Shown here: positions 22,709-60,190 of the stretch, piece after piece
How positions within the stretch are numbered: position 1 is the stretch's first letter
Layout of the letters: each line of letters opens with the position of its first letter
Position numbers and translations under genes: made by a program
Sequence record: MZ475893.1
DNA: 64,000 nucleotides
Direction: 5' to 3' (one strand)
The notes under the pieces: model-generated
What the model saw: only the letters and a program-made list of their open reading frames with translations
Told to the model about the DNA's origin: nothing
The model's database searches: none

Positions 22709-23539
22709 TTATTTTGCAGTGCCCTTGACAGCGGCAACGAACGCAGCGAACGCCGAATCAAAGTCGTTGAACTTGCCCAGCTGCGTAGCTTTGCGATTGT
22801 CTGGATGACCGTGAACAACCTCTTCAATGTGCTCACCGAACTTCACGCTCGCCACAGTGAAGGTGCCTTTACCCATGATGTCCTTGTAGGAGAACTTCAT
22901 GTTAGCGCTTTCACCGAAAACGATAGCAGTGTTCGGTCCGTCCGGAGACGATGTGTAGAAGTAGAAGAAGTCACCAGAGCCATTATCGCCCATACCGCCG
23001 ATAGCGCGTGGTGGAACCTTTTTCAGTCCAGAGAACTTAGCGATACGCTTACCTGCCAGTACGTCATCGCCATCATCAGGCTCAAACAGATTACCGAACT
23101 GGTCCATGGTATGGACAACTACGCCGGTAGCGGCAGAACCCGCAGCTTTGCCGGATCGAGCATTAGTAGCAGCTACACCACGAGCAGGCTTAGCAGCTAC
23201 AGCATTGCCTGCAGTAGGTTTGATTTTGATCGCACGCAGTGCATTGATGGTAGCCACCAGCGTCTTCGCTTTGTACAGGTTACGCACAGCGGTAACGAGG
23301 GTCTTACCAGATGCTTTCTTGGCGAGGCTCTCAGTAGCAGCTTCGTCTTTCAGCACGTCCAGCAGCGTAGACAGGTTAGTAGTGTCCAGCTCTTTGATCT
23401 TGACCAGTTCTTCCAGTCGCTTGACCAGCACGGCAGCATTCTTGCCGAACAGAATAGCAGCATTAGCCTGTTGAGGCTTGGTCGCAGATACGGACTTAAC
23501 CGACGACGCTTTATCGAGATTCAATTTAATCAGTGACAT
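22709..23539 (-). CDS. Ala/Lys-rich protein, MSLIK family (putative internal head protein)
   Basis: N-terminus MSLIKLNL...SVSA shared with 41991-42986 and 42997-43998. Confidence 0.6.
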   Translation of the reverse strand: MSLIKLNLDKASSVKSVSATKPQQANAAILFGKNAAVLVKRLEELVKIKELDTTNLSTLLDVLKDEAATESLAKKASGKTLVTAVRNLYKAKTLVATINALRAIKIKPTAGNAVAAKPARGVAATNARSGKAAGSAATGVVVHTMDQFGNLFEPDDGDDVLAGKRIAKFSGLKKVPPRAIGGMGDNGSGDFFYFYTSSPDGPNTAIVFGESANMKFSYKDIMGKGTFTVASVKFGEHIEEVVHGHPDNRKATQLGKFNDFDSAFAAFVAAVKGTAK

Positions 23540-23550
23540 TGTTTAGATCC

Positions 23551-24105
23551 TTACTTGCGATTTTTAGTCCAGTTAGAATTTTGAGGTTTCTTTTCGCTTT
23601 GTGGCGAAGTGTTTTCCTCGTTAATCTCTTCCTCCTCGTCCTCATCTTCATCCTCGACGACAGGCTCAGCAGCAGGCGCGGCTTCGATCTTAGTCACTTC
23701 GAGAATTTGAGAGGGCAGTGGATTCTGATTTACAGATGATGCGACAGCAGCAGGTTCGCTTACTGTTGGCTCTACAGCAGCAGTCGCACCTACAACATGT
23801 TCGTGGACGATCTGCTTAGTCAGCAACGCGCCTTTCTCAGCGAGAATCTGATCAGCACGTTCTTGGTCCCACTTAACCCACAGGATATCGAGACCCTTAT
23901 GTGCGTACATGAAACCCTGAGGCAGCTTACCACGACCGTTGAACGGCAGGCCGTTAGAAGGAACGCCTGGCTCGAACTCGTCCATCAGTTCCCACTTGCG
24001 CTTAGCTGCGATACACTTCGGTCCCCACACGCCATCACATGCACCATCATACAGATCGAGCATGGTCATGATGACTTGGAGCTTCTGATAGAATTTATTC
24101 AGCAT
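23551..24105 (-). CDS. Hypothetical protein with possible peptidoglycan-binding motif and acidic tract
   Basis: DGACDGVWGPKCIAA resembles the PG_binding_1 DGxxGxxT motif; EDEDEDEEEE tract. Confidence 0.5.
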   Translation of the reverse strand: MLNKFYQKLQVIMTMLDLYDGACDGVWGPKCIAAKRKWELMDEFEPGVPSNGLPFNGRGKLPQGFMYAHKGLDILWVKWDQERADQILAEKGALLTKQIVHEHVVGATAAVEPTVSEPAAVASSVNQNPLPSQILEVTKIEAAPAAEPVVEDEDEDEEEEINEENTSPQSEKKPQNSNWTKNRK

Positions 24106-24367
24106 CTTTCTTTTTCTCCGGACGAGGGACGTCTTTGCCGATGATACGTTTGAACAAACGCAAAGCCATGACAGCTTCGGTCTGAGCCATACGAGATTGC
24201 TGCTGGAACTGCATCGGATTTTCTTTCATCCAATCAACTACACGCTGCAATTCCCGCGCAGTAATCAGCTTTTGGGCCAGCTTACCTTGAAGGTACACAC
24301 GAACACCAGTAGTGGTAATCTTCGCTGCACTGGTGCTCTCTGCCAAATTGATCACAATCTTAGTCAT
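24095..24367 (-). CDS. Hypothetical protein (N-terminal INLAESTSA motif)
   Basis: 90 aa, AAGGA SD. Confidence 0.7.
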   Translation of the reverse strand: MTKIVINLAESTSAAKITTTGVRVYLQGKLAQKLITARELQRVVDWMKENPMQFQQQSRMAQTEAVMALRLFKRIIGKDVPRPEKKKDAE

Positions 24368-24380
24368 TGTCTTTTCCTTA

Positions 24381-24403
24381 AAAGAAAGGGGCCGAAGCCC
24401 CTT
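24381..24403 (-). terminator. Rho-independent terminator
   Basis: AAGGGGC-TTCG-GCCCCTTTCTTT. Confidence 0.75.
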
Positions 24404-24406
24404 GTC

Positions 24407-27400
24407 TTACACTGACTTGTCTTTCGACGCAGTGAGTTTCAGTTTGGTCAACGCAGCCAGACACTGTTTCATGTTCGGGATGCTGTAGCCAGCTTTCTGA
24501 ATACGGTTGATACGTGCTTTCGCACCAGCAACGTTCTTCACGAAGCTAATCCACATACCAGACGACAGGCTGAACGTACCGAACTTACGAGTGTTCGGGA
24601 TTTTCGTTCCCACGAAGCGTTTCACTTTCGGGTTAGTCGCGAGGTCGAACATGATACGCAGACGATCTTCCATCACCATCGGATATGCTTTGATGTGCTT
24701 AACATCTTTCGCAGAGGTGTGACGAATCTGGAAGAACTGTTTCAACTGCGACTGTGCCTTAACAGCCAGCTGGTAGTTGAAGCTCAGCTTAGGCGTAGAC
24801 TCATCGAAGAAGTCCTGAACGAACTCCAGACGGCGAGAGGACGGACCGTCAAAGTCCAGCTTCTTAGCCTCGATGAAGTCCAAGAACTTCTCAAAGTCAG
24901 AGTAGTACGCGCAATCGATATACACGTAATCCCCGAACTCGGTGAACTCGAAGTCCTTGAGCGCTTTCGCATCAGGGTCAGTCGCATCTGCATACAGAGC
25001 AACGAAGCCGTTGTACACGGTAGGCGTCAGTTCCAGAGACATATCGGTACCGTCGTCCAGTGTAACAGCAGCACCACGAACAGCCTTGCGCACTTTATTG
25101 TCCAGCGGAGGAAGTTCAGCAGCCTTACGACGACGAACACGGGCAGCTGCCTGCTCTACGCCTTCGTTGATTGGCTTGCCTTCTTCTTTGTTCGCTTTAC
25201 GTTGAGTAACGCGAGCGTTCTTACGCTCTTGAGCCTCAACTTTCTTCTCGGTTGCTTTCGAGTCGGCAGTTTGAGTCTCATCGGTCACAGTGTCTTCGAC
25301 TTCAACGCGCTTGGCTTCTGCCTCAACACGCTTGCGGTCTTTAGCTGTCGCCCACGGCTTACGCACTTCAAAGAAGCGTTTCAGATCAGCAGGAGATACC
25401 TTACCAGCGTAATGCACTTTGTTCGCAGGCACAGTAACGATTTCCTCGCCACCAGCAAGACGAACACGCACGGTACTGATAGGGCTGTCAGCACGCAGCT
25501 TACCGTCAGCAGTACGAACCGTAACGCTCACGATGATACCGTTACCGAACTCAGTCACAACAGGTGCACGGTTCAGCGCGTCTTTCACGTTCTCGCCACT
25601 TGAGAAGTTCTGGTTGCGTGCCCAATCCAGCAGACGCTCCAGTCCCCAGTTATGACGATCTGGGATCTTCTGGTTAGCAACGATAGGTACCTGCTCCATG
25701 ATACGGAAGTCACGCAGAGCCGGAGTAGCAGGTAGCGGCTGCATTGCTGCAATCGTTGTCTTACGCATCTCTTGGAACTCTTGCGCTTCAATATCGTTCA
25801 GGTCACGCTTGGCCAGGAAGTACGGCTTAAAGTCTTCCATCGTGTTGTTATCGATCAACAGACTTGCATTCATCTTGATTGGAGCAAGCTGATACTGGTC
25901 AAGTTTCTCGTAACGCTGGTTACCTTTCTCATCGAAACGAGTTTTCTCCAGCGTCTTCCACATCAGACGTGCAACCTTACCTACTTCAAGAGTCTTGTTC
26001 GTCATCACCCAATCGATGAACACGGCTTCGCGTTTCATATCGCCTGGCTTACCGTTCTCATCAAGCACGGCAGCAGCAACGTCAGGACGGAAGATACGCG
26101 CAGTAGACTGATCGTATGTACCTGGAGACCACGGTGTGTCACAGCGAATGATACGACTACCCATCTGCATGTTGTGGCCTTCACTGATCGCCTGTTCGTT
26201 AGCAATCAGAATCTGCACACGGTCATCGGTCTTGAACGCGTCAAGGTTGGCCTCTTTGTTCTGGCCTAACTTACCGACTTCACCGTGATACACAACAGCG
26301 ACCTTCTTATAGTTCTCAGGCAGAGCATTAAAGATTGCGTTTGCAGCACGCGTGTAGCGAGTGAACACAATCAGCTTGCCCTGAACCTCTGGCTTCCAGT
26401 AGTCTGGGTCTTCCGGAGGTGGAACCATTGAAGGCGGCAGTGTTTGGCGCTGGAACTCTTCGGACTGCTTACGTGCCAGATACTTCTGACCCTGATAGAC
26501 AGCCATGTCAAGCTCACGAGGAGTAACGCCCTGCGTCCAGTTAAAGATTTGCTGCTCTTTAACCAGCGGGTCACGTTCAGGCTGCACTTCAAAGTGCTTG
26601 CGAATACGCTCGATGATAGTCAGGACTTTCGCAGAAACGAACTTGGTGACACCAGCGTTTTCAAACGTCAGACGAGCAACGTCATCACCCATCGGGTCGG
26701 TCAGCATCATCTCCATGCGCTGGAAGTACATGTTGAGGTCAGCGTTACCTGCGAGCAATGCGCCCAGGTCATCACCTTCTTCAATATCATCTTCGTCAAT
26801 GTCGTCAGAGGCTGTAGCTTCTGCACCGTCCTCTTCGTCATCCTCACCAGCAGATGCAGCACGGCGTTTGGCATTGTTAGCAGCTTCCTGCAACTTCTCC
26901 AACACCTGAGCATACATCGCGTTGTACACCTCTTGGTGCAGCGATGAGTTAGGCACAGTCGGGTCATCAATCTCAACCTGAATGAAGGTATCGATTGGGT
27001 TCGGCAACATGAACGCCCAGTTCTTACGCTTGAACGAGATGAACGCCGTGTGGTTAGACATACGCGAGTGAGCACGACGAATCATTTCAATGTCGTCTTT
27101 CGCGCCGTCGTATGCAACGTCGAGAGAGTCACCGAACATCGCAGGCGTCATCAGTGCAGCCTGACCAACAATGTCACGCACGCGGTCAGTTACCAGAGTA
27201 CCAGTAGCGATACGCGCATAGCGAACAGACGGTGCGGTGAATACTGCTTTGGTGTTGAAGTGCACCTGAGAGCCAGACTGGCCACCAGAGAAGTTCTTAA
27301 CCTTGTGCGACTCATCCAGCATAACGTAGCTGAAATTGAAGCGGTTAACGAACTCAACAGCACCACGTACGCGAACACGCACACCACCAATGTCAACGTT

Positions 27401-30241
27401 GAACGTACCGGTCTGCAAGAAGCTCAGGCCAACGATGAAGAGGGTGTTCTGAGGAGCCTGCTTAATCACGTCGTACATACGATCTTCACCCCAGGAGTTC
27501 ACGGTGTCAGACGTAATAGGTACGGCGTTCCAACCATCAGCGATCTTGTGCAAGTCATCACACCAGTTCGATACGAGGTTGGTAGGGCAGATGATCAGAG
27601 GACGAATGTTCTCTTCACCCAGATCACTCAGCTCCTGAATGGTAGCAGCAATATCGGACAGACCGATGATTGTCTTACCACCGCCAGGCGAGATAAAGAC
27701 TGTAGCGTAGCGCGGACGGCGGCGAAGTGTTTTGTGCGCTTCTACCTGATGTGGTAAGAGTGCAGCACCAGCTTTGAGTCCAGGAATACGAATGTCTTCA
27801 ATCGTGATACCCTGATCAGGCTTGAGGCGTTCAATTTCAGTTTCCGCAGACTCGAAGATCTCCAGAGACTTAGGAATGACCGCGCTGTACATCTTGGAGA
27901 ACGGCAGAATGATTTGCTGCAAACGTTCTGCGCCTGGCGCTTCGTCGCTTTCAACCAGAGAGCTAAACAGCTTCTTACGATCAGCATTGCCGATAGCAGC
28001 AGCCAGCTCACGATACAGCGCACCACCGAAGTAGTTGTTCAGTCGCGCCATGTCGCTGATTTTGGCAGTCTGACCCATCACGAAGTAATGCGTGTGATTA
28101 GGCAGAGACTCCATAGCACCTGCAATGTCGCCGCTCATCTCAGTAACGGTAGTCGCTACCATGTTAGAGCCGCGCAGGCCAGACGCATCGTTGAGCACGC
28201 GCAGCATGATACGCATAGCAATCAGACCAGAATCACCCTGAGCCAGAGTGAAGTCATTCTCAATCAGACCCGCGTACAGGTTGTTGTCAAGAGAGCTTTC
28301 GGTCAGTGACGCGTTCTCTGCATCCATACCGATTGCAGCACGCGCTTGCTTGATCAGCGTAGGCAAATCAGGCACCAGCTTGTGGTCGAATGCGAAAGAA
28401 TACGCAGCCACAGTCTGTGCGATGATGCTAACAAGGCCATCAACTTCCGAGTCTTCGGTGGTCGTAAACACGATGGTCTTGTCGTTGACGCTATCGATCA
28501 GTTTGCCTTTCGCAGCTTCCAGTTTAGCCGCCTGCAACAGCAGGTCATTAGCAACACGATACGAGGTCATGTTACCGCTAGACTGATTGCTCATGATGTT
28601 GCGGATAACGTTCGACGCTGAGCGGAAGTTAGGCGTTTCGCCAGGCTCTGCAAAGTCGTAACCAAGCATATCAGCAACGTCTAACGAGTTAGGCGCTTTC
28701 ATACCGACAGTACGGGTTTCGTTAACCGACAGACCACCACCGTTCGAGGTGTTAACCACCAGCGCGAAGTCTGGGTCGACGCCGATACACACGTTGCTGA
28801 ATCGCGTTAACGATTTGGCTTCCGCCTGCATCGAGTTATCGAAGTCGAGGTTGCCGTTCTGAATAGCGAAGATGTTGGTACGCAGCGTCTGGTGTTCAGT
28901 AGACAGCGGTACGCCTTTCGCAAACAGATGCTCCAGCACGCGGTTCAGTTCGGTTTCGTAGTTGCGCACCATCTCAACGTCAATGTCTTCACGGCGAGGC
29001 AACACAGACAGCGTACCGTTAGGCATGATGGTCAGATCGTTTTCATCTGCAACAACATCATGGACAGCGTAGCCGAACTTCTCACGCAGTTGTTTGAGCG
29101 CAGGCAGGCCAGTAGCAGAGGTAACGTAACGTGGGATACGCGCAGCACGCGTGATACCAGTACGAGTAGAACCACTGATACGGAAGTAATAGCTCGTCCA
29201 GCCCTGGAACCAACGATACAGACACATGGTCTGAGTGTCAGCACCCTGAGAGATGTACTCAACCATCTCTTTGCTCAGGTTAACAATCAGGCCGCCTTCT
29301 GCACGAATGTCGGTAGCAATTGCTACTTCGTTGAACTCCAGCGGATAGTCGTGGCTGATCTTCATCGCTTCGAGTTTGCGATCAATCATCTGCTTACCTG
29401 GGATAGAGCGCAGGCCCAGAGTCATGAAGTCGCCGAGCGCATCAACAACGTCTTTGTCCAGATTACGGAACAGGTTGATATCCAGATTGTGCATCTTCGG
29501 GTGAACACCACGAAGCGCTGCGTTGTAGATAGACCAGTCTTTGCCGAGCGGGATACGAACAACTTTGGTCTGGAACACGTTGGCGTTGGTACGCGCCTCA
29601 CCGAAGATATCCTTATACAGGGTCTTCGCGGCATTGATAGCTGCCTGAGCAATGTCAGAGCTATACACCTGAATGTTCATCTGCTCAAAGTTAGAGTCGT
29701 TATCGACACGAGGACGATCACTACCCTGACTGTTCGTAACGTTGAAGTTACCTGCACCAGCAGCTGGAGACTGCGGGCATGGCGTGCCTGACATGATAAT
29801 GTCTTTGCCGCCTGGGTACACGGTACTGTTTTCGATGATAGCGCCTGAGGTGTTGCTCAAGTTTTCCGCTAACGCCGTTTTGATTTCACGCGACAGCTTA
29901 CCACTATTCAGCAGCACCTGAATCTTGTTCGTGGACATGTCCACATATTGCTGCACACGCTTGGTGAACTCTTCTGGCGCTACTTCCAGAATGTCTTCGA
30001 ACTCAGCGCCATTACGGATGATGTAGTTGAGCAAGTCGAATGCTGCATAGATACGGGCGACAGTTGACGCAGAGAACACGGCCAGTGTTTCATAGTGACG
30101 ACGTGCTTTGCCTGTCACGTACATCTTGGCCATGAGCTGCTCGGAGCCGAACGGTACAGGTTTTACCGCCAGCGCCTGATTAAAGCTATCAGCAATTTGC
30201 TGGGTCGCTGTGGCGGAGGTACTGATAATCTGATTCATCAT
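24407..30241 (-). CDS. Giant SNF2-family helicase/ATPase
   Basis: 1944 aa; PHQ, SPGGGKT, IICPTNLVSNW, LDESHKVKN, ATGT, LIVFT, SEGHNM, DTPWSPGTYDQSTARIFR. Confidence 0.88.
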   Translation of the reverse strand: MMNQIISTSATATQQIADSFNQALAVKPVPFGSEQLMAKMYVTGKARRHYETLAVFSASTVARIYAAFDLLNYIIRNGAEFEDILEVAPEEFTKRVQQYVDMSTNKIQVLLNSGKLSREIKTALAENLSNTSGAIIENSTVYPGGKDIIMSGTPCPQSPAAGAGNFNVTNSQGSDRPRVDNDSNFEQMNIQVYSSDIAQAAINAAKTLYKDIFGEARTNANVFQTKVVRIPLGKDWSIYNAALRGVHPKMHNLDINLFRNLDKDVVDALGDFMTLGLRSIPGKQMIDRKLEAMKISHDYPLEFNEVAIATDIRAEGGLIVNLSKEMVEYISQGADTQTMCLYRWFQGWTSYYFRISGSTRTGITRAARIPRYVTSATGLPALKQLREKFGYAVHDVVADENDLTIMPNGTLSVLPRREDIDVEMVRNYETELNRVLEHLFAKGVPLSTEHQTLRTNIFAIQNGNLDFDNSMQAEAKSLTRFSNVCIGVDPDFALVVNTSNGGGLSVNETRTVGMKAPNSLDVADMLGYDFAEPGETPNFRSASNVIRNIMSNQSSGNMTSYRVANDLLLQAAKLEAAKGKLIDSVNDKTIVFTTTEDSEVDGLVSIIAQTVAAYSFAFDHKLVPDLPTLIKQARAAIGMDAENASLTESSLDNNLYAGLIENDFTLAQGDSGLIAMRIMLRVLNDASGLRGSNMVATTVTEMSGDIAGAMESLPNHTHYFVMGQTAKISDMARLNNYFGGALYRELAAAIGNADRKKLFSSLVESDEAPGAERLQQIILPFSKMYSAVIPKSLEIFESAETEIERLKPDQGITIEDIRIPGLKAGAALLPHQVEAHKTLRRRPRYATVFISPGGGKTIIGLSDIAATIQELSDLGEENIRPLIICPTNLVSNWCDDLHKIADGWNAVPITSDTVNSWGEDRMYDVIKQAPQNTLFIVGLSFLQTGTFNVDIGGVRVRVRGAVEFVNRFNFSYVMLDESHKVKNFSGGQSGSQVHFNTKAVFTAPSVRYARIATGTLVTDRVRDIVGQAALMTPAMFGDSLDVAYDGAKDDIEMIRRAHSRMSNHTAFISFKRKNWAFMLPNPIDTFIQVEIDDPTVPNSSLHQEVYNAMYAQVLEKLQEAANNAKRRAASAGEDDEEDGAEATASDDIDEDDIEEGDDLGALLAGNADLNMYFQRMEMMLTDPMGDDVARLTFENAGVTKFVSAKVLTIIERIRKHFEVQPERDPLVKEQQIFNWTQGVTPRELDMAVYQGQKYLARKQSEEFQRQTLPPSMVPPPEDPDYWKPEVQGKLIVFTRYTRAANAIFNALPENYKKVAVVYHGEVGKLGQNKEANLDAFKTDDRVQILIANEQAISEGHNMQMGSRIIRCDTPWSPGTYDQSTARIFRPDVAAAVLDENGKPGDMKREAVFIDWVMTNKTLEVGKVARLMWKTLEKTRFDEKGNQRYEKLDQYQLAPIKMNASLLIDNNTMEDFKPYFLAKRDLNDIEAQEFQEMRKTTIAAMQPLPATPALRDFRIMEQVPIVANQKIPDRHNWGLERLLDWARNQNFSSGENVKDALNRAPVVTEFGNGIIVSVTVRTADGKLRADSPISTVRVRLAGGEEIVTVPANKVHYAGKVSPADLKRFFEVRKPWATAKDRKRVEAEAKRVEVEDTVTDETQTADSKATEKKVEAQERKNARVTQRKANKEEGKPINEGVEQAAARVRRRKAAELPPLDNKVRKAVRGAAVTLDDGTDMSLELTPTVYNGFVALYADATDPDAKALKDFEFTEFGDYVYIDCAYYSDFEKFLDFIEAKKLDFDGPSSRRLEFVQDFFDESTPKLSFNYQLAVKAQSQLKQFFQIRHTSAKDVKHIKAYPMVMEDRLRIMFDLATNPKVKRFVGTKIPNTRKFGTFSLSSGMWISFVKNVAGAKARINRIQKAGYSIPNMKQCLAALTKLKLTASKDKSV

Positions 30242-32803: not shown

Positions 32804-33610
32804 TTAGAAGCTGTGTGCGCGAATACGATCAGCCAGAAGCGAGAAGTATTCAGGGCTGTAGCGATATACCTTAGCGTAGTAGTCGAGCAGCTTAGGCACA
32901 TCAACACCAGCAGCGGCAGACACGCTATCCAGCGCAGGGAACTGGCGCTCGTCAAGCTCATCGCTCGGCAGCACAGCTACCATTGAAGCTGAGGTGATTT
33001 GTTCGTTGTTACCTTCGAAGTCAACAACAAGGAAGCTGTTGTCGTCAGTAACACGCGCAGCAACGAAGCCAACAGTCAACGCACCTGACGCAGACACGAA
33101 GCTAATCATGTCACCGCCCTGAGCACCAGCACGGTCAGCAGCATTAGCAGACAGAGCCTGGGCAACTTCTGGCAGACGTGCGTTCAGGTTGAAAGCAGCA
33201 GCACCAGACACAGAGCGAATCATATCGATCAGGTCGGCGTTATCGTTTGCTTCTGACTGGCGCACCAGAACATCTTCACCGCTTTCAGATTTGCGAACAG
33301 CCCACATGCGCTCTTGTTTGTCCATGTACATGTTCTTGGACAGAGCCTGGAACTCATCGCCCATCTGAGCAACAGGAACGATATCCTGCATACGGGTCAG
33401 AATGGTACGAACGAAGCTGGAGGTTTTACCCTGCTCAATCATCGAGGTCGCACCCTGAACAGGCATGAACTCGCGATCACAGGAAGCGCTCACGATAGCA
33501 CCGAAGTTATCGGTAATATCTTCGTTTGGGGTATGTGTAACTTGCACGATGGCCACACTCTGGGTGTCGTTGAGCTGGTCAATCTGCTTGATGAAAGCGT
33601 CCATTGTCAT
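32804..33610 (-). CDS. Hypothetical protein, probably virion/head-associated
   Basis: Start reassigned to MTMDAF (AGGAG SD); late-class motif upstream; several internal SxSA-like sites. Confidence 0.65.
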   Translation of the reverse strand: MTMDAFIKQIDQLNDTQSVAIVQVTHTPNEDITDNFGAIVSASCDREFMPVQGATSMIEQGKTSSFVRTILTRMQDIVPVAQMGDEFQALSKNMYMDKQERMWAVRKSESGEDVLVRQSEANDNADLIDMIRSVSGAAAFNLNARLPEVAQALSANAADRAGAQGGDMISFVSASGALTVGFVAARVTDDNSFLVVDFEGNNEQITSASMVAVLPSDELDERQFPALDSVSAAAGVDVPKLLDYYAKVYRYSPEYFSLLADRIRAHSF

Positions 33611-33653
33611 CTCCTGGGATATGTTTGACAATATGAAATTAGTATTTCGAGGG

Positions 33654-34818: not shown

Positions 34819-35925
34819 TCAACCTGCCTTAGTGAGTCCCAGGTACTCAATTAAATTGCGTAGCTGGTCATTGAACCCACCGGATATAAGCGCTCTCGCC
34901 ATATTCAAGTGATTCGAAGAAACTGCACGCACAACCTTAGCCTGATACTCTGGAACGTTTTGCATGTTCTGAGTCAGGTTGTAGAAATAGCTGCGCACAA
35001 AGTTAGTTCGCTCCACATTGCTCGCTTCCATATCAGACGTATCTTGCGTCGGAGTAAGAAGCATATACAGGGCAGCAAGCAGTTCAGGAGTCGGGTCAAC
35101 AATCTGCGATGCGATAGCGGCACTAAGTTTCATCATGCCTTTCGCAACGAAGTCCGCGACAGTTTTGTCGATATACTCGGTGCCAGACTTGCCTACGTTC
35201 GGAAGATACAGTTTCGGCAGAATGTACATGCAGAAGTAAAGAGGGAAGTCTTTACGCATAACGTCCGAGATAAGCATCTCTGAATAGTCTTTCCAGATGT
35301 TCACGTTGTAGTGCCATTCATCGTACGGCACAGTGCGCATCAGGTTAGACACACTCAGGTCGAGCACCTGATTGGCTGTCGTAGCCAAGTCGATGTAGTT
35401 TGCAGCAGGCGAAAGGGACGCACTCGAAACCAATTGAACGTAGTTACGAGTCACAGCACCAACAGTGTTGTAGATAACATTGAGGAACTCAAGTCCGTTG
35501 CCGTTAAGCGCGAACAACACAGAGCGAGGTAGACCGACAGTCAGGTATTCGTTATTGTCAGCTACACCCCATAAACGCCAATAGCGCCCACGACCAAGCT
35601 GCGTCAGAGGTTGAGGCAGCACGCGGTTGGGGCGCGGCTTGAGGCAAAACGTGAAGCAGATACCGCTGTCAATCATGATCACTGAATCATCGGGGCGATT
35701 CGAGTAACCCATCGACATTTGATTGTCGGTACTGAATACGTTAACCAGAGTGAAGTTCAGAGCTTTGGTGAAAGGCATCTGAGCTTCAATTATCTGGGAG
35801 ATGACTTGACGCAAGATAGTGTCAAGCACATAAGGAGAAGCACTTCGCATTTGTTGCGGTCGATACTGACCACCGAAAGTGCTTTCCTTGAATGTGCGAT
35901 CTACCTTGTAGTGGGTCATTGCCAT
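34819..35925 (-). CDS. Hypothetical protein
   Basis: 368 aa, coupled to upstream gene. Confidence 0.7.
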   Translation of the reverse strand: MAMTHYKVDRTFKESTFGGQYRPQQMRSASPYVLDTILRQVISQIIEAQMPFTKALNFTLVNVFSTDNQMSMGYSNRPDDSVIMIDSGICFTFCLKPRPNRVLPQPLTQLGRGRYWRLWGVADNNEYLTVGLPRSVLFALNGNGLEFLNVIYNTVGAVTRNYVQLVSSASLSPAANYIDLATTANQVLDLSVSNLMRTVPYDEWHYNVNIWKDYSEMLISDVMRKDFPLYFCMYILPKLYLPNVGKSGTEYIDKTVADFVAKGMMKLSAAIASQIVDPTPELLAALYMLLTPTQDTSDMEASNVERTNFVRSYFYNLTQNMQNVPEYQAKVVRAVSSNHLNMARALISGGFNDQLRNLIEYLGLTKAG

Positions 35926-37214
35926 TACTTGACCGACTGTTTAAGCAGACGCTTCTGTTGAGGACTCAGACCCATAACGTCGGAGATTTGATCAATCTTC
36001 GCCAGAGTCAGAACGCCTTTAGCAGTACCGCTAGAACCAGTCAGGCTGATCTTAACGAACTCACGTCCTTCACGACCTGTGACCAGCTGGTGGATAAGAG
36101 TGTTCTTACCGCTACGGCCCGCACGCAATGCGCTGCTTGCCATGCCCAGAATCTCGGTAACAGCTTCGCGCTTCTCGGAAGGAGACAGGCCAGGAACGAG
36201 ACGCACATAAAGGCTGTCGTTCTGCACACGCACGGAGTCGAAGATTTCTTTCTTGCGACCACGAACGGTATGCTGGCGTTGACCCAACTGAGTCATGTTA
36301 CGCAGGTCATCAGTCGAACGATTGATAGGCTTACGTTCGCTGTAGTTCAGGAATCCATCCAGAGCCATCAGCTGGTTGATAGCACGCTTCATTTCAGGAG
36401 CGGTTTCAATCAGACGGCCCAGTGGGAATGAGTTAGGAACTTTCTCATCCACCAGCGAGGTGATGTAGTTTTCACTCAGACCAGTAGCCACTGCAATCTT
36501 GGTAGAGACTACGATAGCATAGGTCGGATAGTGCAGGCCGTCAGAGTTCACGAAGTTATCGATGAACACATAGGTCTGGAAGATGATTGGGTCAGTACCC
36601 TGCGCGATGAAAGTACGTGTACGAATCTTAGAGTAATCTTCTTTACTCAGAATCTTCGACAGGTAGTTAGCGATGGTAGCAGCCAACTTGGTGTGTTCTT
36701 TCGGTGCGCCGTTCTTAACGTCAATGCTCATCAAACGCACCAGCTGGGTCTGCTGGTCTTTGGCCTGATTGATAACACTAAGCAATGACTTGGAAGCGCC
36801 TGTCTGATCTTTGAAGGCACTGAACGTTTTGCTATTCAGAATCTGATAAGCAACGGACAACTCGCCGATAGCCTGAGACAACTGACTGACCTGAGCGTTA
36901 TATTTAGCTTTGTTCTGGACGTCAGAAATATCAATCTTCGACAAGTCGATCACTTGGTTCAGATCGATTGACTTGGCCTGTTTACCTTTGATTGAGCCTT
37001 CCAGATCAGAAAGTTCAATCGCTTTAGGGCTGGCGCTAACAGACAGCAGCTTCTTAGGAATGGTTACAGAGGTAGCAAGAGAGATAACGTTTTCAAGTAC
37101 CTTCTTGAACTCTTTAGCAGTACGTGCATTACGCAACGCCACCATGTTCCCAGAGCCGTAATCAACGGATGCGCTGATGCTGCTAACTTCATTGTTTTTG
37201 GCAGTCTTAGCCAT
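35925..37214 (-). CDS. Hypothetical protein, probably virion-associated
   Basis: Start reassigned to MAKTAK (GAGGA SD); late-class motif upstream; SSISA and SVSA sites. Confidence 0.65.
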   Translation of the reverse strand: MAKTAKNNEVSSISASVDYGSGNMVALRNARTAKEFKKVLENVISLATSVTIPKKLLSVSASPKAIELSDLEGSIKGKQAKSIDLNQVIDLSKIDISDVQNKAKYNAQVSQLSQAIGELSVAYQILNSKTFSAFKDQTGASKSLLSVINQAKDQQTQLVRLMSIDVKNGAPKEHTKLAATIANYLSKILSKEDYSKIRTRTFIAQGTDPIIFQTYVFIDNFVNSDGLHYPTYAIVVSTKIAVATGLSENYITSLVDEKVPNSFPLGRLIETAPEMKRAINQLMALDGFLNYSERKPINRSTDDLRNMTQLGQRQHTVRGRKKEIFDSVRVQNDSLYVRLVPGLSPSEKREAVTEILGMASSALRAGRSGKNTLIHQLVTGREGREFVKISLTGSSGTAKGVLTLAKIDQISDVMGLSPQQKRLLKQSVK

Positions 37215-37327
37215 GATTATCCTCGGCTGGGGCAATTGTTCGAATCGAGTAAAAATTAGCGACAAGGAGCTGTTTATTTCTGATCTTAGCGCAGGAAGAC
37301 TTTACAAATTTTTTGACTGAGAATGAC

Positions 37328-38053: not shown

Positions 38054-38168
38054 GATTATATCCTCAAGTTACAATGAAACTTCGTCCTATGGACATTAAG
38101 TTTTGAAATCAGCAAGTAAAAATTAGTATAATCCCCGTAGGAATAAACAGGAAATTTCCTAAACATTT

Positions 38169-39248: not shown

Positions 39249-39286
39249 TCTGTTCCATACGTTTTAGTGTAAGCTATTTACAGAAT

Positions 39287-39308
39287 AAAGGGCAGCCGAA
39301 GCCGCCCA
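39287..39308 (-). terminator. Rho-independent terminator
   Basis: TGGGCGGC-TTCG-GCTGCCCTTT. Confidence 0.65.
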
Positions 39309-41990: not shown

Positions 41991-42986
41991 TTATTTACGT
42001 TTGGCTTTCTTAGCCACACCGTACTCTGGGTTCTTGTCAGAGATATTGTACTGACGGCCACCAGCTTCCTGGATCATGTCAGGTAGTTCATCCAGTCCAG
42101 TTTTCTCGGCGTGAGCACCTGTGAACTGGTAAGTCTTACCATCTTTAGCCATGATCTCAATTGAACCATTCTTGCCGATAGAATAATTCATATGCTTGAG
42201 ATCAGATTTACGGAAGCCAGGAATTTCTTTCTTGGCGTTGGCCAGCATAGTTTTTTCTTCTGCTTCCCACTGCTTGCGCATTTGTGCCAAACGCTTCGCA
42301 CCGCCTGGTTTCATTTTCTTCATTGCACCAGGACGGACTTGTTTCGTTGCAGGCTTCTTCCTTAGCATCGGTTTAGTAGCTGCATCTACTTCATCCATGG
42401 ACAGAACGCGGCCTTTAGCTGGCGCTTTCTTAGCTGCTTTGGTGATAGTCTTGCTGCCCAGCGCATCGAACTTGGCAGAAGCCAGAAACTTAGGCTTGAA
42501 CTGACCGCGCTTACCAGTAACGCCGAACTCGTTCAGTTTGGCAGTGCGCAACGCAGCTAACACCTTAGGTGCTTTCTCTGTGATACCCTGAAGAGAAGTT
42601 GAGGTCAGTCCCATCTTCAAGCCAGACAGTCCGTGCTTACGTGCATAAGACGCAGACTCTTTCAGGTGCAACTTGGCTTCTTTGAGTGCAGCGCTACCCT
42701 TAGCTTTATAGTCAGCAGCTTTAGCACTAGCGCGAGACTTTGCATCACCAGTCAGCGTTTTGACTTTAGCACGGGCCTTGCTCCACGCATCGATGTTACG
42801 CGCAGCACTAACGCCAGCAGTCTTCGCCTTTTTCAAATGGCCGAGGATGGTAGTCAGTTCTGCTTTCTTCTCTGAGTTGATAACCAGAGTAGCAACGCCA
42901 TTCACCTTAGCGATTTTGTAGCTAGGCTTTTTAGCAGCAGACTCCGACACAGCGTGATCTGCAAGATTGATTTTAATGAGTGACAT
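41991..42986 (-). CDS. Lys/Ala-rich protein, MSLIK family (putative internal head protein)
   Basis: 331 aa; MSLIKINLADHAVSESAAK; paralog of the next ORF. Confidence 0.7.
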   Translation of the reverse strand: MSLIKINLADHAVSESAAKKPSYKIAKVNGVATLVINSEKKAELTTILGHLKKAKTAGVSAARNIDAWSKARAKVKTLTGDAKSRASAKAADYKAKGSAALKEAKLHLKESASYARKHGLSGLKMGLTSTSLQGITEKAPKVLAALRTAKLNEFGVTGKRGQFKPKFLASAKFDALGSKTITKAAKKAPAKGRVLSMDEVDAATKPMLRKKPATKQVRPGAMKKMKPGGAKRLAQMRKQWEAEEKTMLANAKKEIPGFRKSDLKHMNYSIGKNGSIEIMAKDGKTYQFTGAHAEKTGLDELPDMIQEAGGRQYNISDKNPEYGVAKKAKRK

Positions 42987-42996: not shown

Positions 42997-43998
42997 TTAT
43001 GCGTTGTATTGAGTCAATGGCCGTGGCTTACGCTTAGGCAAACGTTTTGTTTTTATACCAGCAGCTTTATCTGAGGCGCGTTTATCTTCGCGTGCAGAGA
43101 TGCCAACTGTTTGTGACAGGTAGCTGGTCAATGAAGCCTTAGACAAGGTTTCTTTGCGCTTGCCTGAGTCAACAATATATGAATTGCCCGAAGCGTGCGT
43201 GATCTTGAGCCTGAGCTTACCATTGTCATAATGGATGTTGCCGTCAGCATCACCGTACAGTTTGGCAGACGCAGCTTTTTCCTGATACTTCTCCAGCTTG
43301 CCGATAACGCTACGCAGAGCGCTACTGCTTTTGTAGATATTGTTCAGGTGCTTCTTACCTTCGTCCACTTTAGGCGCGGCAGCTTTCTTCGTCACAGGCT
43401 TTGTAACTAAACGCTTGGTAGTTTTCACAGCAGGTGCTTTACCCGAAGCTGCGATCTTCTCACCAATCTTATCGAACTTATCACCAGTAGCATATCGAGG
43501 CTTCAAAGGTACTGTGCGATGTGCACCGTCTTTTGCACGGAAGCTATCAGGCTTCGCTTTACTGATCTTGCCTAACGTATAGGTCGGGTCAGTTTGTGTG
43601 ATATAGGACGCTTTGATGGACAGGTCGAGCGCACTCAATCCAGCTTTCTTCAAAAGGTCAGCAGCAGCTTTAGCAAGTGCTTTGGCTTCTGTTACACCGT
43701 GCTTGATAGCTGCTTTGTTATCACTAATCTTTTCACGAATAGGCGCTTTCTTTGCAGGGGTCTGAGCCTGACTTAGCTTGAGTTTCAATTTCTCAGTAGC
43801 AACACCAAGCTTTGCCGTAGACACGCCTAGAGTTTTAGCCTTCTTGAGATTGGCTACAGCTTTCGTAACAGCAGACTTGTGTTTGCTGTCAATCACGAGA
43901 GCCTGTGCACCGCCGATAGGAACGAGATGATAAGCTGGCTTAGCTTTGGCCGATTCAGATACTGCAAACTCCGCCAAATTGATTTTGATAAGTGACAT
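42997..43998 (-). CDS. Lys/Ala-rich protein, MSLIK family (putative internal head protein)
   Basis: 333 aa; MSLIKINLAEFAVSESAKAK. Confidence 0.7.
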   Translation of the reverse strand: MSLIKINLAEFAVSESAKAKPAYHLVPIGGAQALVIDSKHKSAVTKAVANLKKAKTLGVSTAKLGVATEKLKLKLSQAQTPAKKAPIREKISDNKAAIKHGVTEAKALAKAAADLLKKAGLSALDLSIKASYITQTDPTYTLGKISKAKPDSFRAKDGAHRTVPLKPRYATGDKFDKIGEKIAASGKAPAVKTTKRLVTKPVTKKAAAPKVDEGKKHLNNIYKSSSALRSVIGKLEKYQEKAASAKLYGDADGNIHYDNGKLRLKITHASGNSYIVDSGKRKETLSKASLTSYLSQTVGISAREDKRASDKAAGIKTKRLPKRKPRPLTQYNA

Positions 43999-44007: not shown

Positions 44008-44604
44008 TTAGACTCTGCCGGTCATAGTAAATTCTTTGCCCGCAGAGTAATCTCCTAAGGCCGCATAAAGAGAATCACGCAACATCTTCTGAATGATATC
44101 CGAGTTGTACGCGGACGCATCGCGGAAAGCGACTTCAACAGTTTCAGTGCGTGGGTTGATCACAGCATAACGTAGAGGAGCAATCTCCTGAGCGTCACAC
44201 CACAGATCGACAACGTGCTGTAGCCCAGGCGTCATCTGAATTTTGAAATCAGACAACAGGAACACAGCACTTTGAATCGGAGGCGGAGCAGACTGAGAGA
44301 CAACAGCATTGTCTCCAAGTTTCTCCATAGCCATAGACGCATTATACACTGAGGAGAATTTCGTTCTCAGTGTAGAGGTCTGTACTACCTTATAGCTATT
44401 CGATGAAATGCCCTGACGACGCAGCTTGGCAATACGCACAACGTAATCACCAGAATCGTCTGAGGCAAATGCAACGTAAGCGTAGCTCACGAAGCCAGGC
44501 TCCTCACTAAGCAGCTTGTGGTCTAGGGCACGAACACCCAAGACAGCACTAAGTGCCTGTAGGCCCATCTGAACTTCGCGGGACAGAGACACGTACATTT
44601 CCAT
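44008..44604 (-). CDS. Hypothetical protein (MExxVSLS family)
   Basis: 198 aa, MEMYVSLS N-terminus. Confidence 0.7.
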   Translation of the reverse strand: MEMYVSLSREVQMGLQALSAVLGVRALDHKLLSEEPGFVSYAYVAFASDDSGDYVVRIAKLRRQGISSNSYKVVQTSTLRTKFSSVYNASMAMEKLGDNAVVSQSAPPPIQSAVFLLSDFKIQMTPGLQHVVDLWCDAQEIAPLRYAVINPRTETVEVAFRDASAYNSDIIQKMLRDSLYAALGDYSAGKEFTMTGRV

Positions 44605-45181: not shown

Positions 45182-45229
45182 GATATTTACCTTTACGAAG
45201 TGTACGAGAAAATTATCATAGGGAACGAC

Positions 45230-49331: not shown

Positions 49332-49395
49332 AGCGCTTGCCTATGTGTAGTGTATTGTTGATGGACGTTATTTACAGTATTTGAGGCATACAGAC

Positions 49396-49433: not shown

Positions 49434-49880
49434 TTAATATCTACGAGGCTTCTTAGGCTTCTTGATCGTAGACTTGGGACGCTTGATAGCCCGCAGTGCT
49501 TTGCGTGCTTCCACAATTTGTTTGGCCACAGTGGAACGACGAGCTTTGACCTGTTCTGTATCTTGGTCAGTGCCTTTCAGCTTATCGAGTCTGTTCCATT
49601 CTTTCACCAGACGATCAACAACACCAGCACGACCGACGCGTTGCTGGTTGATGCGCACAATGTCCTGATGAGTCTTCACGGAGTTTTGTGCGTCTTTCTG
49701 TTTAGCACGCGCAGATGCAACGTGATCAGAGTTACCCTCAGCAGACTTCTCGTTAAGCTGCTTACGTCTAAGTGCCAGACGGCGTTGCGCTTGCTTGAGT
49801 TCGTCTTTGGAGTTCTCCAGTTGCGTCTGCATGTCTTCAAGAGGACTTGAGCGTGCGCTCAGACTAACGAGAAGTTCCAT
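49434..49880 (-). CDS. Basic coiled-coil protein (MExxVSLS family)
   Basis: Start reassigned to MELLVSLSA (GAGGA SD); Lys/Arg-rich C-terminus. Confidence 0.7.
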   Translation of the reverse strand: MELLVSLSARSSPLEDMQTQLENSKDELKQAQRRLALRRKQLNEKSAEGNSDHVASARAKQKDAQNSVKTHQDIVRINQQRVGRAGVVDRLVKEWNRLDKLKGTDQDTEQVKARRSTVAKQIVEARKALRAIKRPKSTIKKPKKPRRY

Positions 49881-49887
49881 AGGTTCC

Positions 49888-50439
49888 TCACACAGGCTGT
49901 ATGGTAATGATCTGGACGCCTTGTTCATTACGCGACTTGAGAATGCGGAAGCGGAAGTCTATTGGATAAATCCATTCGAGTTCATCCATAAGACCATCAA
50001 GAATCATCTCACGTTCTTCTTCGTCACCACCGAATTCTTTATCAAGATCAGCAGCCATGATAAGATTGTACGTGCGTTGCCAATAGTTGAAGGCTTTGTT
50101 CTTTGGCCCAGGAAGAATCTCCAGCATCGTATCTGTCTTGCCTGCCTTTGCAAAACCTTTAGCAGTAGCGAAGTCTTGACTGAACGACAGGTACTTGTTG
50201 ATCATCACGAAAGGATTCTTAGCCTGCTTAAACAGAGCCATGAGTTCTTTTTCGTACAGACCACGATACAGAGGCATCTCAGGACGTTCGGGATATTTAG
50301 CGATCAGATCATCAAGCGCAGGGCTGGAGCGATTAGCGTCAATCACATGCCCTTTATCGTGGAGCATCGTCCACATAATGTCTTGCTGTCTGTCTGTGTA
50401 GGCAGGTATCTTAGCACTGAGGCTAACCATAAGTTCCAT
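49888..50439 (-). CDS. Mono-ADP-ribosyltransferase (R-S-E clade, Alt/Mod-like)
   Basis: LYRG, YLSFS, DELEW (ExE) motifs in 183 aa; MELMVSLSA N-terminus. Confidence 0.78.
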   Translation of the reverse strand: MELMVSLSAKIPAYTDRQQDIMWTMLHDKGHVIDANRSSPALDDLIAKYPERPEMPLYRGLYEKELMALFKQAKNPFVMINKYLSFSQDFATAKGFAKAGKTDTMLEILPGPKNKAFNYWQRTYNLIMAADLDKEFGGDEEEREMILDGLMDELEWIYPIDFRFRILKSRNEQGVQIITIQPV

Positions 50440-50450
50440 GCATGTTCCTT

Positions 50451-50478
50451 AAAAGAAAAGGCGGACCGAAGCCCGCCT
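50451..50478 (-). terminator. Rho-independent terminator
   Basis: AGGCGGGC-TTCG-GTCCGCCTTTTCTTTT. Confidence 0.7.
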
Positions 50479-50567
50479 ATGAGTAATGTGCGCTATGCAC
50501 TCGACGGTTAAGTCTCCTGCTATTGTTTTACCTCGTTGCAGTAAACGAGGAGATAAGGATCACCTCC

Positions 50568-51104
50568 TCAGACGGTACCTAATACTTCAAGCACATCTTC
50601 GTCGTCCACACTTGCAGACCACGAACGCATAACAGAAGCATTGCCGCGATTGCCTGTCAGCATTGATTTAACTGCTGGTGTGGCTTCGATTTCGGCATAG
50701 TGTTCCAAGAGAGCTTTGTCATCTTTGAACCACATAATGGAGTTACCGTCCTTAGGGACGATCAAGAATTGGGTAGGCTTCTGGGTGACGTTCAACGTCA
50801 GATAGTAATCACCAGCACCTTTAGGAGTCAGCATTGGCATCGGCTTCATCGCATACATGAAGTCCTTAGCGTGCATGAGTTTCTGATCGCCGAGCAACCA
50901 GATTGCGCCTTCTTCGCCTTGACGCACAGCAGACAAATCGCCTTTACGTGTTGCAATCGTTCCGAATACATCTTTATCGAAACGTGACAGACCGAAGATC
51001 AGCGATGCGAGACGCTTCAGGTCCGGGGTCGTGCATGGACTGTTGATTACAGCCATACCCTCAGACCCAAGTGTGAATTTAGAGAGTGAAATAAAGAGTT
51101 CCAT
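50568..51104 (-). CDS. Hypothetical protein (MExxISLS family)
   Basis: Probable start MELFISLS; late-class motif upstream. Confidence 0.65.
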   Translation of the reverse strand: MELFISLSKFTLGSEGMAVINSPCTTPDLKRLASLIFGLSRFDKDVFGTIATRKGDLSAVRQGEEGAIWLLGDQKLMHAKDFMYAMKPMPMLTPKGAGDYYLTLNVTQKPTQFLIVPKDGNSIMWFKDDKALLEHYAEIEATPAVKSMLTGNRGNASVMRSWSASVDDEDVLEVLGTV

Positions 51105-51169
51105 CGTAACGTCCATACCGTCTTATGAATGTATGGTAAAATTAGTGTTCCTTAAGACATTTCTGAAAT

Positions 51170-52492: not shown

Positions 52493-52546
52493 GATGCTAT
52501 TGCCCTTTAGTTTGATGCTTACTGTCGATATTTACAGATTTTAGAC

Positions 52547-52843: not shown

Positions 52844-52899
52844 AACATCTCCTGAATATTAAACCTCAACGTTCTTGAATTATGTTTACAGATTGCTTC

Positions 52900-53295
52900 G
52901 GTCCGTCCTTGCGATTTAAAGTCAGAATAGTCTTAAACTCCAATAAGCTCTTGTTAGAACGTATTGGAGTCCACCCTGTCAGATGACGGTCGTTCAGGGC
53001 TTTCTCCCCGCACACTTATATAGCGCCGTGCGGCAGGCTGCGCTCGCGAGGTCTTATGTTTTCCACAGCAGGTGGTCCAGGAGGTAGCGTCCTCTGAAAA
53101 GATACCCGCCGCACAACAGCCTCGCTATCGGCCAATCAGCGATACGCGGTGTTACGCTGAATCGACCTAAGTGACTCTGGCCGAGTCGTGTACAAAAAAA
53201 AAGAGTTCGGTCCCAATCAAAAAGATGGCGAAAAAGAAAGGGACCGAACAAAAGGCACTCAGCGCAAACTCCTTATGCACTGTTTTTGTACTTGG
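52900..53295 (-). ncRNA. Candidate structured non-coding RNA
   Basis: About 400-nt gap with at least 8 complementary stems, late-class motif at 53298-53304, no convincing ORF. Confidence 0.45.
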
Positions 53296-53331
53296 GAAAA
53301 TTAGTGACATTCCCTTTTATTCAGAAAATTC

Positions 53332-59144: not shown

Positions 59145-59208
59145 ATCGTGATTACCTGAGTTTTTCTATCTGATATTTACAGATTCAGACTTATCTTATG
59201 ACCCGTAC

Positions 59209-59519
59209 GCTACAGCGCTTGGTACGGCTACAGCTACTACAGCGGAGCTAGCGGGATACGCGCTTGGCTTGATCGAAACATGGAAGGAGAGGTACATCTT
59301 TAGGCGGCACGTTTTGTAGAGGCTGAATCCGAGAGATTAGCACTATCAATGCCCCTCCACCCATGCTGGAGCTGCTTAGAATAGCATTCTGTTAGGATAA
59401 TTTAGGTCGTCTAAACCGTGTAAATTTTCCCGAGAAAACAGACGATTTTCCGTAAAACACGCCCGTTTTCAGACAAAAACCAGAAAAATCTTAATAAAAT
59501 CAAGGACTTTTCCGAAAAC
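59209..59519. repeat. Non-coding region with CTACAGC repeats and phased TTTTC..AAAAC repeats
   Basis: CTACAGC at 59210, 59228, 59237; TTTTC(C) at 59425, 59446, 59466, 59508. Confidence 0.6.
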
Positions 59520-59530
59520 TACTCAGGAAA

Positions 59531-60190
59531 TCACTTCTTGCGAGAGATCTTTTGGTTCAATTTCTTACCGATTTGAGACAAAACGCGCTCGACTGTTTCA
59601 CCGTCACGTTCACCGATAGCCATAGCGAGCCTTTCGCCCTGTTCACGCGATAGCTCAGGCATAATCAGCTTGAGCATCTTTGATCGCGCCTTTGCAGACT
59701 TTGATTTGCCTTTTGACAGCGATTGCGTTTCCATTTCGGCAGCAACACGGCTCATTGTGCGCTGCACACGACGATCTGCGAATATATCACCGAAGATATT
59801 GCCAAACAGGTCTTGGAACGAACGTCCGCCACCAAATATCTCGTCCTTTGTGAAGCGCACTTCCTTTCCTAGCGCATTACGCTTAACGCTGTGCGTGCTT
59901 TCCACTTCGTTTTGGACGCGTGCACCTTCGATGAAGTTCTCATCAGGCCGCGATTTCTTACCTTCAGCACCGGGCTTAGTGACGCCGTTACGCAGCTCAG
60001 CACGCCCCTCAACAGCCGCATCAGGGTCAAACATGTCATCCGTGTTGACGCTCTGATTAGGGTCAAAGGGGATTTTGTCTGTCAGCTTGTTTTCATCTGG
60101 CCACGAACGAGGGATATCAGACGCCGGCTGAGGGCTGTTTGTCATATCACCGTTCTTCTCGCTGTTCAGACTCACATAAATCTTGGTCAT
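59531..60190 (-). CDS. Hypothetical protein (MTKIYVSLNS N-terminus)
   Basis: 219 aa, GGAG SD; basic C-terminus. Confidence 0.7.
   Translation of the reverse strand: MTKIYVSLNSEKNGDMTNSPQPASDIPRSWPDENKLTDKIPFDPNQSVNTDDMFDPDAAVEGRAELRNGVTKPGAEGKKSRPDENFIEGARVQNEVESTHSVKRNALGKEVRFTKDEIFGGGRSFQDLFGNIFGDIFADRRVQRTMSRVAAEMETQSLSKGKSKSAKARSKMLKLIMPELSREQGERLAMAIGERDGETVERVLSQIGKKLNQKISRKK

Follow-up and report, generated by a model that had tools for sequence, protein, structure and literature searches.

A portable N-terminal Ser-x-Ser leader in Erwinia jumbo phage pEa_SNUABM_45 as a candidate capsid-targeting propeptide

The 64,000-nucleotide stretch of DNA analysed here (the window) is 100% identical to positions 124001-188000 of Erwinia phage pEa_SNUABM_45 (MZ475893.1), a jumbo myophage of 264 kb in the genus Snuvirus. 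It was found that 11 proteins encoded on the minus strand of the window begin with a common short sequence (the tag), which is made of two elements: a short hydrophobic stretch right after Met-x-x, and Ser-x-Ser, usually followed by Ala. The tag is real, portable and under protein-level selection, and it is deeply conserved in the lineage of this phage. As a hypothesis, a capsid-targeting and maturation propeptide is well supported, and on balance we lean towards it.

Genome-wide results given below refer to pEa_SNUABM_7, a RefSeq-annotated relative which is 97.8% identical. Further relatives are Y3, Alexandra, AD1, Yoloswag, the Dickeya JA phages, Lu11 and PaBG, which are comprised in the 'Lupandier' group (PMC7412058). 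The phage encodes a 366-residue capsid protein, a head maturation protease and its own sigma factor, and it is therefore not phiKZ-like; no chimallin-type features were seen in it. The clamp-loader-anchored search of IMG/VR gave only SNUABM_7 and Y3 as useful relatives, and fENko-Kae01 was rejected as unrelated.

The shared N-terminus and its conservation

The tagged proteins are listed below and are named in the text by the window position of their start.

22709-23539, minus: 276-residue basic protein; tag at residues 1-19 (23483-23539), strand IKLNL, then S-V-S-A
24095-24367, minus: 90-residue basic protein; tag at residues 1-14 (24326-24367), IVINL, then S-T-S-A
24407-30238, minus: 1943-residue SNF2/Helicase_C protein; tag at residues 1-9 (30212-30238), I-I-S-T-S-A
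35925-37214, minus: 429-residue basic protein; motif at residues 9-15, V-S-S-I-S-A at 10-15 (37170-37214)
41991-42986, minus: 331-residue protein with 17% Lys; tag at residues 1-17 (42936-42986), IKINL, then S-E-S-A
42997-43998, minus: 333-residue Lys-rich paralogue of 42986; tag at residues 1-17 (43948-43998)
44008-44604, minus: 198-residue protein; tag at residues 1-8 (44581-44604), Y-V-S-L-S
49434-49880, minus: 148-residue basic protein; tag at residues 1-9 (49854-49880), L-V-S-L-S-A
49888-50439, minus: 183-residue predicted ADP-ribosyltransferase (ART) of the R-S-E type; tag at residues 1-9 (50413-50439), M-V-S-L-S-A
50568-51104, minus: 178-residue protein, which opens a late-type unit; tag at residues 1-8 (51081-51104), F-I-S-L-S
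59531-60190, minus: 219-residue basic protein; tag at residues 1-11 (60158-60190), Y-V-S-L-N-S, then a linker and a C-terminal domain at about residues 150-219

A sequence-only reading of the window had reported these 11 N-termini, and all of them were found at their coordinates on the minus strand. Plausible ribosome-binding sites precede all 11 starts; for the SNF2 protein, the ATG at 30241 and that at 30238 are both usable. In the 'short' tags of 8-9 residues the two elements overlap (...V-S-L-S-A), and in the 'long' tags of 14-19 residues they lie 5-10 residues apart (...I-K-I-N-L-A-E ... S-E-S-A). The residues that follow are often polar or basic and linker-like.

By a motif-free test, a high-scoring 8-mer within residues 2-12 was common to 10 protein pairs, involving 11 proteins, whereas three control segments gave 0-1 pairs. 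Three hydrophobic residues followed by [S/N][L/M], with the start at residue 3-5, were present in 10 of the 68 window proteins versus 0.06 after shuffling (maximum 2). S-x-S-A was found in the first 20 residues (start within the first 17) of 8 window proteins, compared with 0.35 expected. Over the whole pEa_SNUABM_7 genome, the strict pattern matched 18 of 10,826 candidate starts, 11 of the 18 being annotated gene starts, and the same core occurred just 31 times in 84.5 thousand residues. The members beyond the window are gp083, gp141, gp156 (an NAD-dependent ligase), gp157, gp233, gp243, gp253 and gp254, and tagged genes amount to about 19-20 of 346. The gene at 49331 (M-E-H-L-Y-I-S-M) was considered as a twelfth window member and dropped; the motif is absent from its orthologues, and the gene lies behind a replication-type promoter-like motif (motif A, below).

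As had been noticed from the sequence, the Ser codons differ between copies (AGT, AGC, TCA, TCT and TCC, and in addition TCG), so the constraint acts on the protein. A nucleotide-level signal, such as an RNA or translation element, was rejected, because the peptide is kept while synonymous codons vary. The further claim that the downstream domains are unrelated holds for most of the proteins: 42986 and 43998 are the sole clear paralogues (E 5e-28), but 23539 is weakly related to them (E 0.004). The description of the members as Lys-rich was also borne out (median isoelectric point 9.7 versus 6.3; Lys 10.2% versus 6.5%, p 0.006). Pfam gave no match for most tagged proteins, and no description of such a tag was found in the searchable literature.

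The tag was kept in orthologues down to about 30-40% identity. In the orthologues of Y3, AD1 and SNUABM_16 (about 50-75% identity) the core is kept while positions 2-4 drift, and the N-terminus of 37214 is identical in AD1 and pEa_SNUABM_16. The 25 SNF2 orthologues down to 41% identity all start with 0-4 residues followed by hydrophobic-S-x-S-[A/K]. For the 43998 family, just the first 60-96 residues still match in distant relatives. The 44604 orthologues in Y3, AD1 and SNUABM_16 begin at the tag; the RefSeq start of the pEa_SNUABM_7 orthologue is 60 nucleotides too far upstream, inside the endolysin gene.

The portability of the tag is seen where gene content varies. The slot between the orthologues of 51104 and 49880 is occupied by the ART in Snuvirus and by an unrelated 256-residue protein with the same leader in Y3; in AD1 it is empty. 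Gene 24367 is found in Snuvirus only, and the corresponding slot of AD1 is empty. Four tagged genes in a row follow the endolysin gene in AD1, Y3 and SNUABM_16, including one for a 169-residue protein that is absent from the window. This protein (AD1 gp189, L022:20913-21422; Y3_193, L008:22312-22824; L023:20928-21437) has an early Y-Y-R-G motif and no Pfam or PHROG match, and it may be a second, unrelated ADP-ribosyltransferase-like cargo. PaBG gp83 and gp219 carry the I-K-I-N-L leader and otherwise have no similarity to Snuvirus proteins. A degenerate scan of IMG/VR DNA for M-x-x-IKINLAE returned PaBG, SNUABM_7 and SNUABM_35 only, plus one internal chance match in an unrelated high-GC contig.

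Head proteins, cargo and expression class

The Ser-x-Ser element was also observed on proteins of the head itself. The head protease was assigned to the PHROG head maturation protease family (1e-125), with His124 and Ser181 invariant. No sequence-level match was obtained in PDB or Pfam, and gp21 was reached by fold search only: the AlphaFold2 model is confident (predicted local distance difference test, pLDDT, 84.6), and its best and only meaningful PDB match is T4 gp21 (5jbl, probability 0.85). By the family match, the invariant residues and this model, the phage encodes a gp21-like prohead serine protease. Among its homologues, hydrophobic-x-S-x-S-F is the sole conserved feature of the first 55 residues (23 of 32, down to 29% identity), and the S-x-S segment is disordered in the model. 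In the capsid protein, a conserved L-S-x-S-T at residues 32-36 stands directly before the invariant G37-E38, and distant capsid proteins start aligning at residues 35-37. For the capsid protein of PaBG, shortening during maturation is known. In the portal, L-S-Q-S-A is present at residue 50.

A further protein of the capsid operon, pEa_SNUABM_7 gp149 (L005:10885-12957; 690 residues, annotated 'ATPase'), has a very acidic, Asp/Glu-rich centre. It contains 8 S-x-S-[A/G] sites versus 0.73 expected (11-fold, p 1e-6), with D-S-E-S repeated within an E-D-F-D-S-E-S unit. Such an excess would be expected if a scaffold or core protein were cut into pieces, and from its sequence gp149 is more likely a scaffold or prohead-core protein than an 'ATPase'. 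The window protein at 32804-33604, which adjoins the head-tail connector and lies behind a motif B site (below), has four S-x-S-[A/G] sites (p 2e-4).

Virion content is available for PaBG, for which 14 Coomassie-visible virion proteins were reported, with the helicase-like gp202 (221 kDa) as band 1 and gp83, of unknown function, as band 9 (PMC7412058, Table 1). It was found that gp83 starts M-L-I-K-I-N-L, that is, with the long-tag leader, and that gp202 is the syntenic, full-length orthologue of the SNF2 protein of the window (29% identity, E 0) with an N-terminus of ...N-S-L-S-A. Thus two of the five tagged proteins seen in PaBG fall among these 14 of 317 proteins (p 0.017). PaBG virion protein gp191 was rejected as a homologue of the Lys-rich 38053 protein of the window, no homology being detectable.

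Both enzymes that had been listed as cargo, the giant SNF2 protein and the ART, carry the tag. The SNF2 protein (215 kDa) matches Pfam SNF2-rel_dom and Helicase_C. Its orthologue in Yersinia phage fHe-Yen9-02 (P0088) is 2458 residues long and has a LAGLIDADG-type domain (PF14528), which suggests an intein or homing-endonuclease insertion in the helicase gene. The ART matches PHROG 832, RNA polymerase ADP-ribosylase (2.6e-13). S6, L7, S8 and A9 of its tag are invariant among homologues, as are R59, S85 and S87, and E153 and E155 are candidate catalytic Glu residues. Its AlphaFold2 model is weak (pLDDT 57, with residues 1-39 below 50), and the top 50 Foldseek matches of the model are all ARTs. 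With the Arg, Ser-x-Ser and Glu motifs on an ART fold, the protein is predicted to be an R-S-E ADP-ribosyltransferase of the Alt/Mod-like kind. A 238-residue antisense open reading frame runs across the ART gene (window 49795-50511, plus strand); it exceeds real genes in length and misleads longest-frame calling.

The NAD-dependent DNA ligase (pEa_SNUABM_7 gp156, L005:18241-20211) has its tag-like leader, ...R-L-S-I-S-A, on an N-terminal extension for which the PaBG ligase has no counterpart. The C-terminal domain of 60190 (the last ~70 residues, ...R-S-x-M-L-x-x-I-M-P-x-L-S...) recurs in many basic metagenomic proteins of 70-80 residues from uncultured phages, some of them marine. These small proteins keep their synteny, always downstream of a protein of ~370 residues (P0103-P0125; L034-L038), and 19 of 29 have a hydrophobic leader of 4-18 residues ending [S/A]-x-[S/A]-[R/K] exactly where the poly-basic stretch starts. 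This small-x-small junction looks like a propeptide cleavage site and suggests a rule that predates the Erwinia phages and extends beyond them.

Two promoter-like motifs were enriched in the intergenic DNA. Motif A, CTGTAAATA, is found about 35-50 nucleotides before the ATG and precedes the DNA polymerase, clamp loader, SSB, SbcD, ligase and ParB-like genes. Motif B, CTAATTT, is found about 25-40 nucleotides before the ATG and precedes the portal operon, the capsid operon, both sheath-like genes, a baseplate-region gene and the endolysin gene (GH108 plus a peptidoglycan-binding domain). The sites in the window, and the three units with tagged genes that are headed by motif B, are as follows.

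Motif A sites, minus: 59174-59181, 52529-52536, 49369-49376, 39275-39282, 22647-22654, 14128-14135
Motif B sites, minus: 61329-61335, 51139-51145, 45210-45216, 38120-38126, 37253-37259, 33636-33642, 11296-11302, 8857-8863
45210-45216, minus: late-type promoter-like motif B (ATAATTT), heads endolysin, 44604, 43998 and 42986
51139-51145, minus: late-type promoter-like motif B (CTAATTT), after a terminator hairpin at 51199-51172, heads 51104, ART and 49880
61329-61335, minus: late-type promoter-like motif B (ATAATTT), heads 61306 and 60190

Terminator-like hairpins bracket the 51104/ART/49880 unit, the closing one being at 49426-49402, and another (41986-41967) closes the endolysin unit after its final gene, 42986. 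Gene 37214 and the Lys-rich 38053 gene also lie behind motif B sites. Genes standing first behind motif B are tagged in 4 of 13 cases, compared with 19 of 346 genome-wide (p 0.004). The two motifs probably distinguish a middle from a late class of promoters, and the sigma factor encoded by the phage may take part in reading them. The promoter-like motif B is common to the portal, capsid, sheath and endolysin units and heads most tagged units, and it may point to late-type expression of the tagged genes together with the head genes. An ART behind a late-type promoter would make most sense if it were packaged for the next infection, like T4 Alt.

Some other features of the intergenic DNA were observed. 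A near-identical terminator hairpin (GGGTGGCTTCGGCTGCCC, then a T run) occurs four times on the minus strand of the window (518-535, 11329-11346, 22672-22689 and 39290-39307) versus 0.02 expected, each copy just upstream of a promoter-like motif. Two long gaps, at 52844-53331 (488 nucleotides) and 59145-59530 (386 nucleotides), have no convincing genes; no tRNA or Rfam family was matched there or anywhere else in the window.

Proposed role of the tag and alternatives

We propose that the tag is a propeptide of 7-19 residues, in which a hydrophobic, strand-forming stretch and then Ser-x-Ser, often with Ala, would recruit late-made cargo into the assembling prohead. The cargo would include the Alt-like ART, the 215-kDa SNF2 helicase-like protein, several Lys-rich basic proteins and small proteins of unknown function. 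Ser-x-Ser would be the recognition and cleavage site of the gp21-like protease, which would follow a small-x-small rule and cut just after the second Ser, so that the tag would be removed when the head matures. The mature proteins would then be located with the DNA and would exit along with it on infection. Binding to a prohead component, the exact position of the cut and injection are what we infer from the features described above. The head-tag interpretation, which was put forward in the sequence-only reading, is supported in part: the tag is a genuine, transferable protein-level element, and its link to the head is backed independently by the tagged gp202 and gp83, which are virion proteins of PaBG, and by S-x-S on the protease, the capsid protein, the portal and the scaffold-like protein.

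A number of points weigh against the propeptide proposal. T4-type proteases cut after Glu, and most tags have no Glu at the site. The fold match of the protease to gp21 is weak (E 0.026, TM-score 0.35-0.49), and the low confidence of the ART model makes a position of the tag outside the fold only suggestive. S-x-S is a low-information motif, and the search patterns were refined after the data had been seen. Protein 37214 is the weakest member, without a hydrophobic strand, and the strand is also missing in the AD1 orthologue of 23539, where it is replaced although S-V-S-A is kept. The PaBG virion list consists of 14 abundant bands of a distant relative and is silent on the processing of gp83 and gp202. 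The assignment of the tagged genes to late-motif operons stands for most of them, which lie in B-headed units, but not for the ligase, gp233 and gp243 of pEa_SNUABM_7: the ligase with its tag-like N-terminus sits behind the replication-type motif A, and gp233 and gp243, with tag-like N-termini, are in non-structural gene strings. The SNF2/24367/23539 string has no clear motif B site either. Because of the missing Glu and the tagged genes outside late-type units, the claim that the tag defines the injected cargo can be made only conditionally.

A wider proposal, which we put forward more tentatively, is that the jumbo phage lineage from PaBG to the Erwinia, Dickeya and Yersinia phages (for the 60190 family, the marine metagenomic relatives too) relies on a single portable leader, 7-19 residues long, that combines a hydrophobic strand with small-x-small. 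This leader, cut by a gp21-like protease of non-Glu specificity, may load the capsid with a changeable arsenal that comprises the ART, the 215-kDa SNF2 motor, basic DNA-associated proteins and possibly a DNA ligase.

It could be argued that Ser-x-Ser is only a cleavage or docking site of the protease, that the proteins reach the prohead otherwise, and that the hydrophobic stretch is incidental. Such a division would account for S-x-S inside the capsid protein, the portal and the scaffold-like protein, which assemble on their own, and for S-x-S without a strand in 37214 and in the AD1 orthologue of 23539. However, the hydrophobic run before S-x-S is itself enriched (the 10 of 68 proteins given above) and conserved in orthologues, and it is the sole feature that PaBG gp83 and gp219 have in common with the window proteins. 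We therefore regard this explanation as unlikely.

A role of the tag as docking peptide or degron, with a partner outside the capsid, is likewise improbable; such a partner could be a chaperone, a replication/repair hub, or an AAA+ protease of the host by which harmful enzymes are kept short-lived. It would then be left unexplained why the motif is shared by the head protease, the capsid protein, the portal and the scaffold-like protein, why two tagged proteins are in the PaBG virion, and why tagged genes are presumably co-transcribed with structural and lysis genes. What speaks for it is that nucleic-acid enzymes are tagged (SNF2, the NAD-dependent ligase and PaBG gp84, annotated as topoisomerase I), that some tagged genes are outside late-type units, and that ClpX can recognise short N-terminal hydrophobic motifs.

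Inherited similarity, in which old paralogues would have kept a common first beta-strand of an N-terminal domain with no signal function, seems very unlikely to us. Proteins 42986, 43998 and Y3_206, and weakly 23539, are indeed related beyond the tag, and the first 60-96 residues are the most conserved part of the 42986/43998 family; but the ART, 49880, 51104, 44604, 60190 and SNF2 proteins show no similarity past about 9 residues. The polar, linker-like character of the sequence after many tags is also at odds with a shared domain. The known ART fold does not need the tag, the first 39 residues of the model being those with pLDDT below 50, and the ligase motif is on an extension that its PaBG counterpart lacks. 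Finally, an unconventional export or membrane-targeting signal tied to the neighbouring lysis genes is hardly credible: three to four tagged genes directly follow the endolysin gene and S-L-S-A resembles the small-x-small rule of signal peptidase, but the leaders, which often start M-E, do not have the features of a Sec-type signal peptide: with just 3-5 hydrophobic residues, they lack both a positively charged n-region and an h-region as long as that of a signal peptide. A 215-kDa ATPase of cytoplasmic type and an NAD-using ART are also among the cargo.

Comparison with known packaging systems

To our knowledge, N-terminal capsid-targeting signals are established for few phages only, T4 and P1. 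If the capsid-targeting propeptide is real, packaging and delivery to the host could be predicted by a sequence rule for the orphan genes, roughly 70% of the genes in this jumbo-phage group, and the injected proteome could be deduced straight from the genome sequence of these phages. The propeptide would also represent a second, chemically different specificity for a head protease of the gp21 fold, provide a compact handle on what the SNF2 motor and the ART, once packaged, do within the first minutes of an infection, and account for enzymes that do not look structural being made late and found in virions.

Small-x-small rules are known elsewhere. Signal peptidase recognises A-x-A, and herpesvirus assemblin, which is in the fold class of the phage prohead proteases, recognises (V/L)-x-A|S. 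The tag resembles these sites in having small residues at P3 and P1 after a hydrophobic residue; this is an analogy of site chemistry only, and the cleavage position considered here is the one proposed above. In phiKZ and SPN3US, propeptides of head and ejection proteins are cut by the prohead protease at S/A/G-x-E or A-x-E. Those are also jumbo phages, in which many head-internal proteins, the protease and the capsid protein have one short consensus, used there for maturation cleavage. In the phage studied here, by contrast, which belongs to an unrelated lineage and has a small capsid protein and a sigma factor, the consensus has no Glu and the propeptides would be much shorter.

By analogy, the tag is most likely a functional counterpart of the T4 capsid-targeting sequence and of the P1 DarB signal, with a sequence of its own and a non-Glu site. 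The T4 capsid-targeting sequence is N-terminal and is carried by the internal proteins IPI, IPII and IPIII, and the ADP-ribosyltransferase Alt is packaged in the same phage. Both systems have a short N-terminal peptide on otherwise unrelated, often basic, late-made proteins (late-type units, in the present case), cargo genes in variable cassettes, an ART among the cargo and a protease of gp21-like fold; removal at maturation and injection with the DNA would be further likenesses under our proposal. The differences are that no sequence similarity exists between the two signals, and that the site is Ser-x-Ser(Ala) in the window proteins, only some tags having a Glu nearby, as against (Leu/Ile)-x-Glu in T4 (consensus partly from PMC9024508). 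The present phage further differs in its 366-residue capsid protein and its PaBG/Y3/AD1 lineage, and in a two-part tag with a variable spacer of 0-10 residues. In P1, the first 30 residues of DarB suffice to load a reporter (PMC9024508). DarB is a virion-borne protein of >200 kDa with a helicase domain, and the tagged SNF2 protein, whose PaBG orthologue is in the virion, is likened to it by size and helicase domain; no methyltransferase domain was detected in the window protein by Pfam. The Dar proteins of P1 have no common N-terminal motif (PMC9024508), whereas one motif is common to about 20 proteins in the present case.

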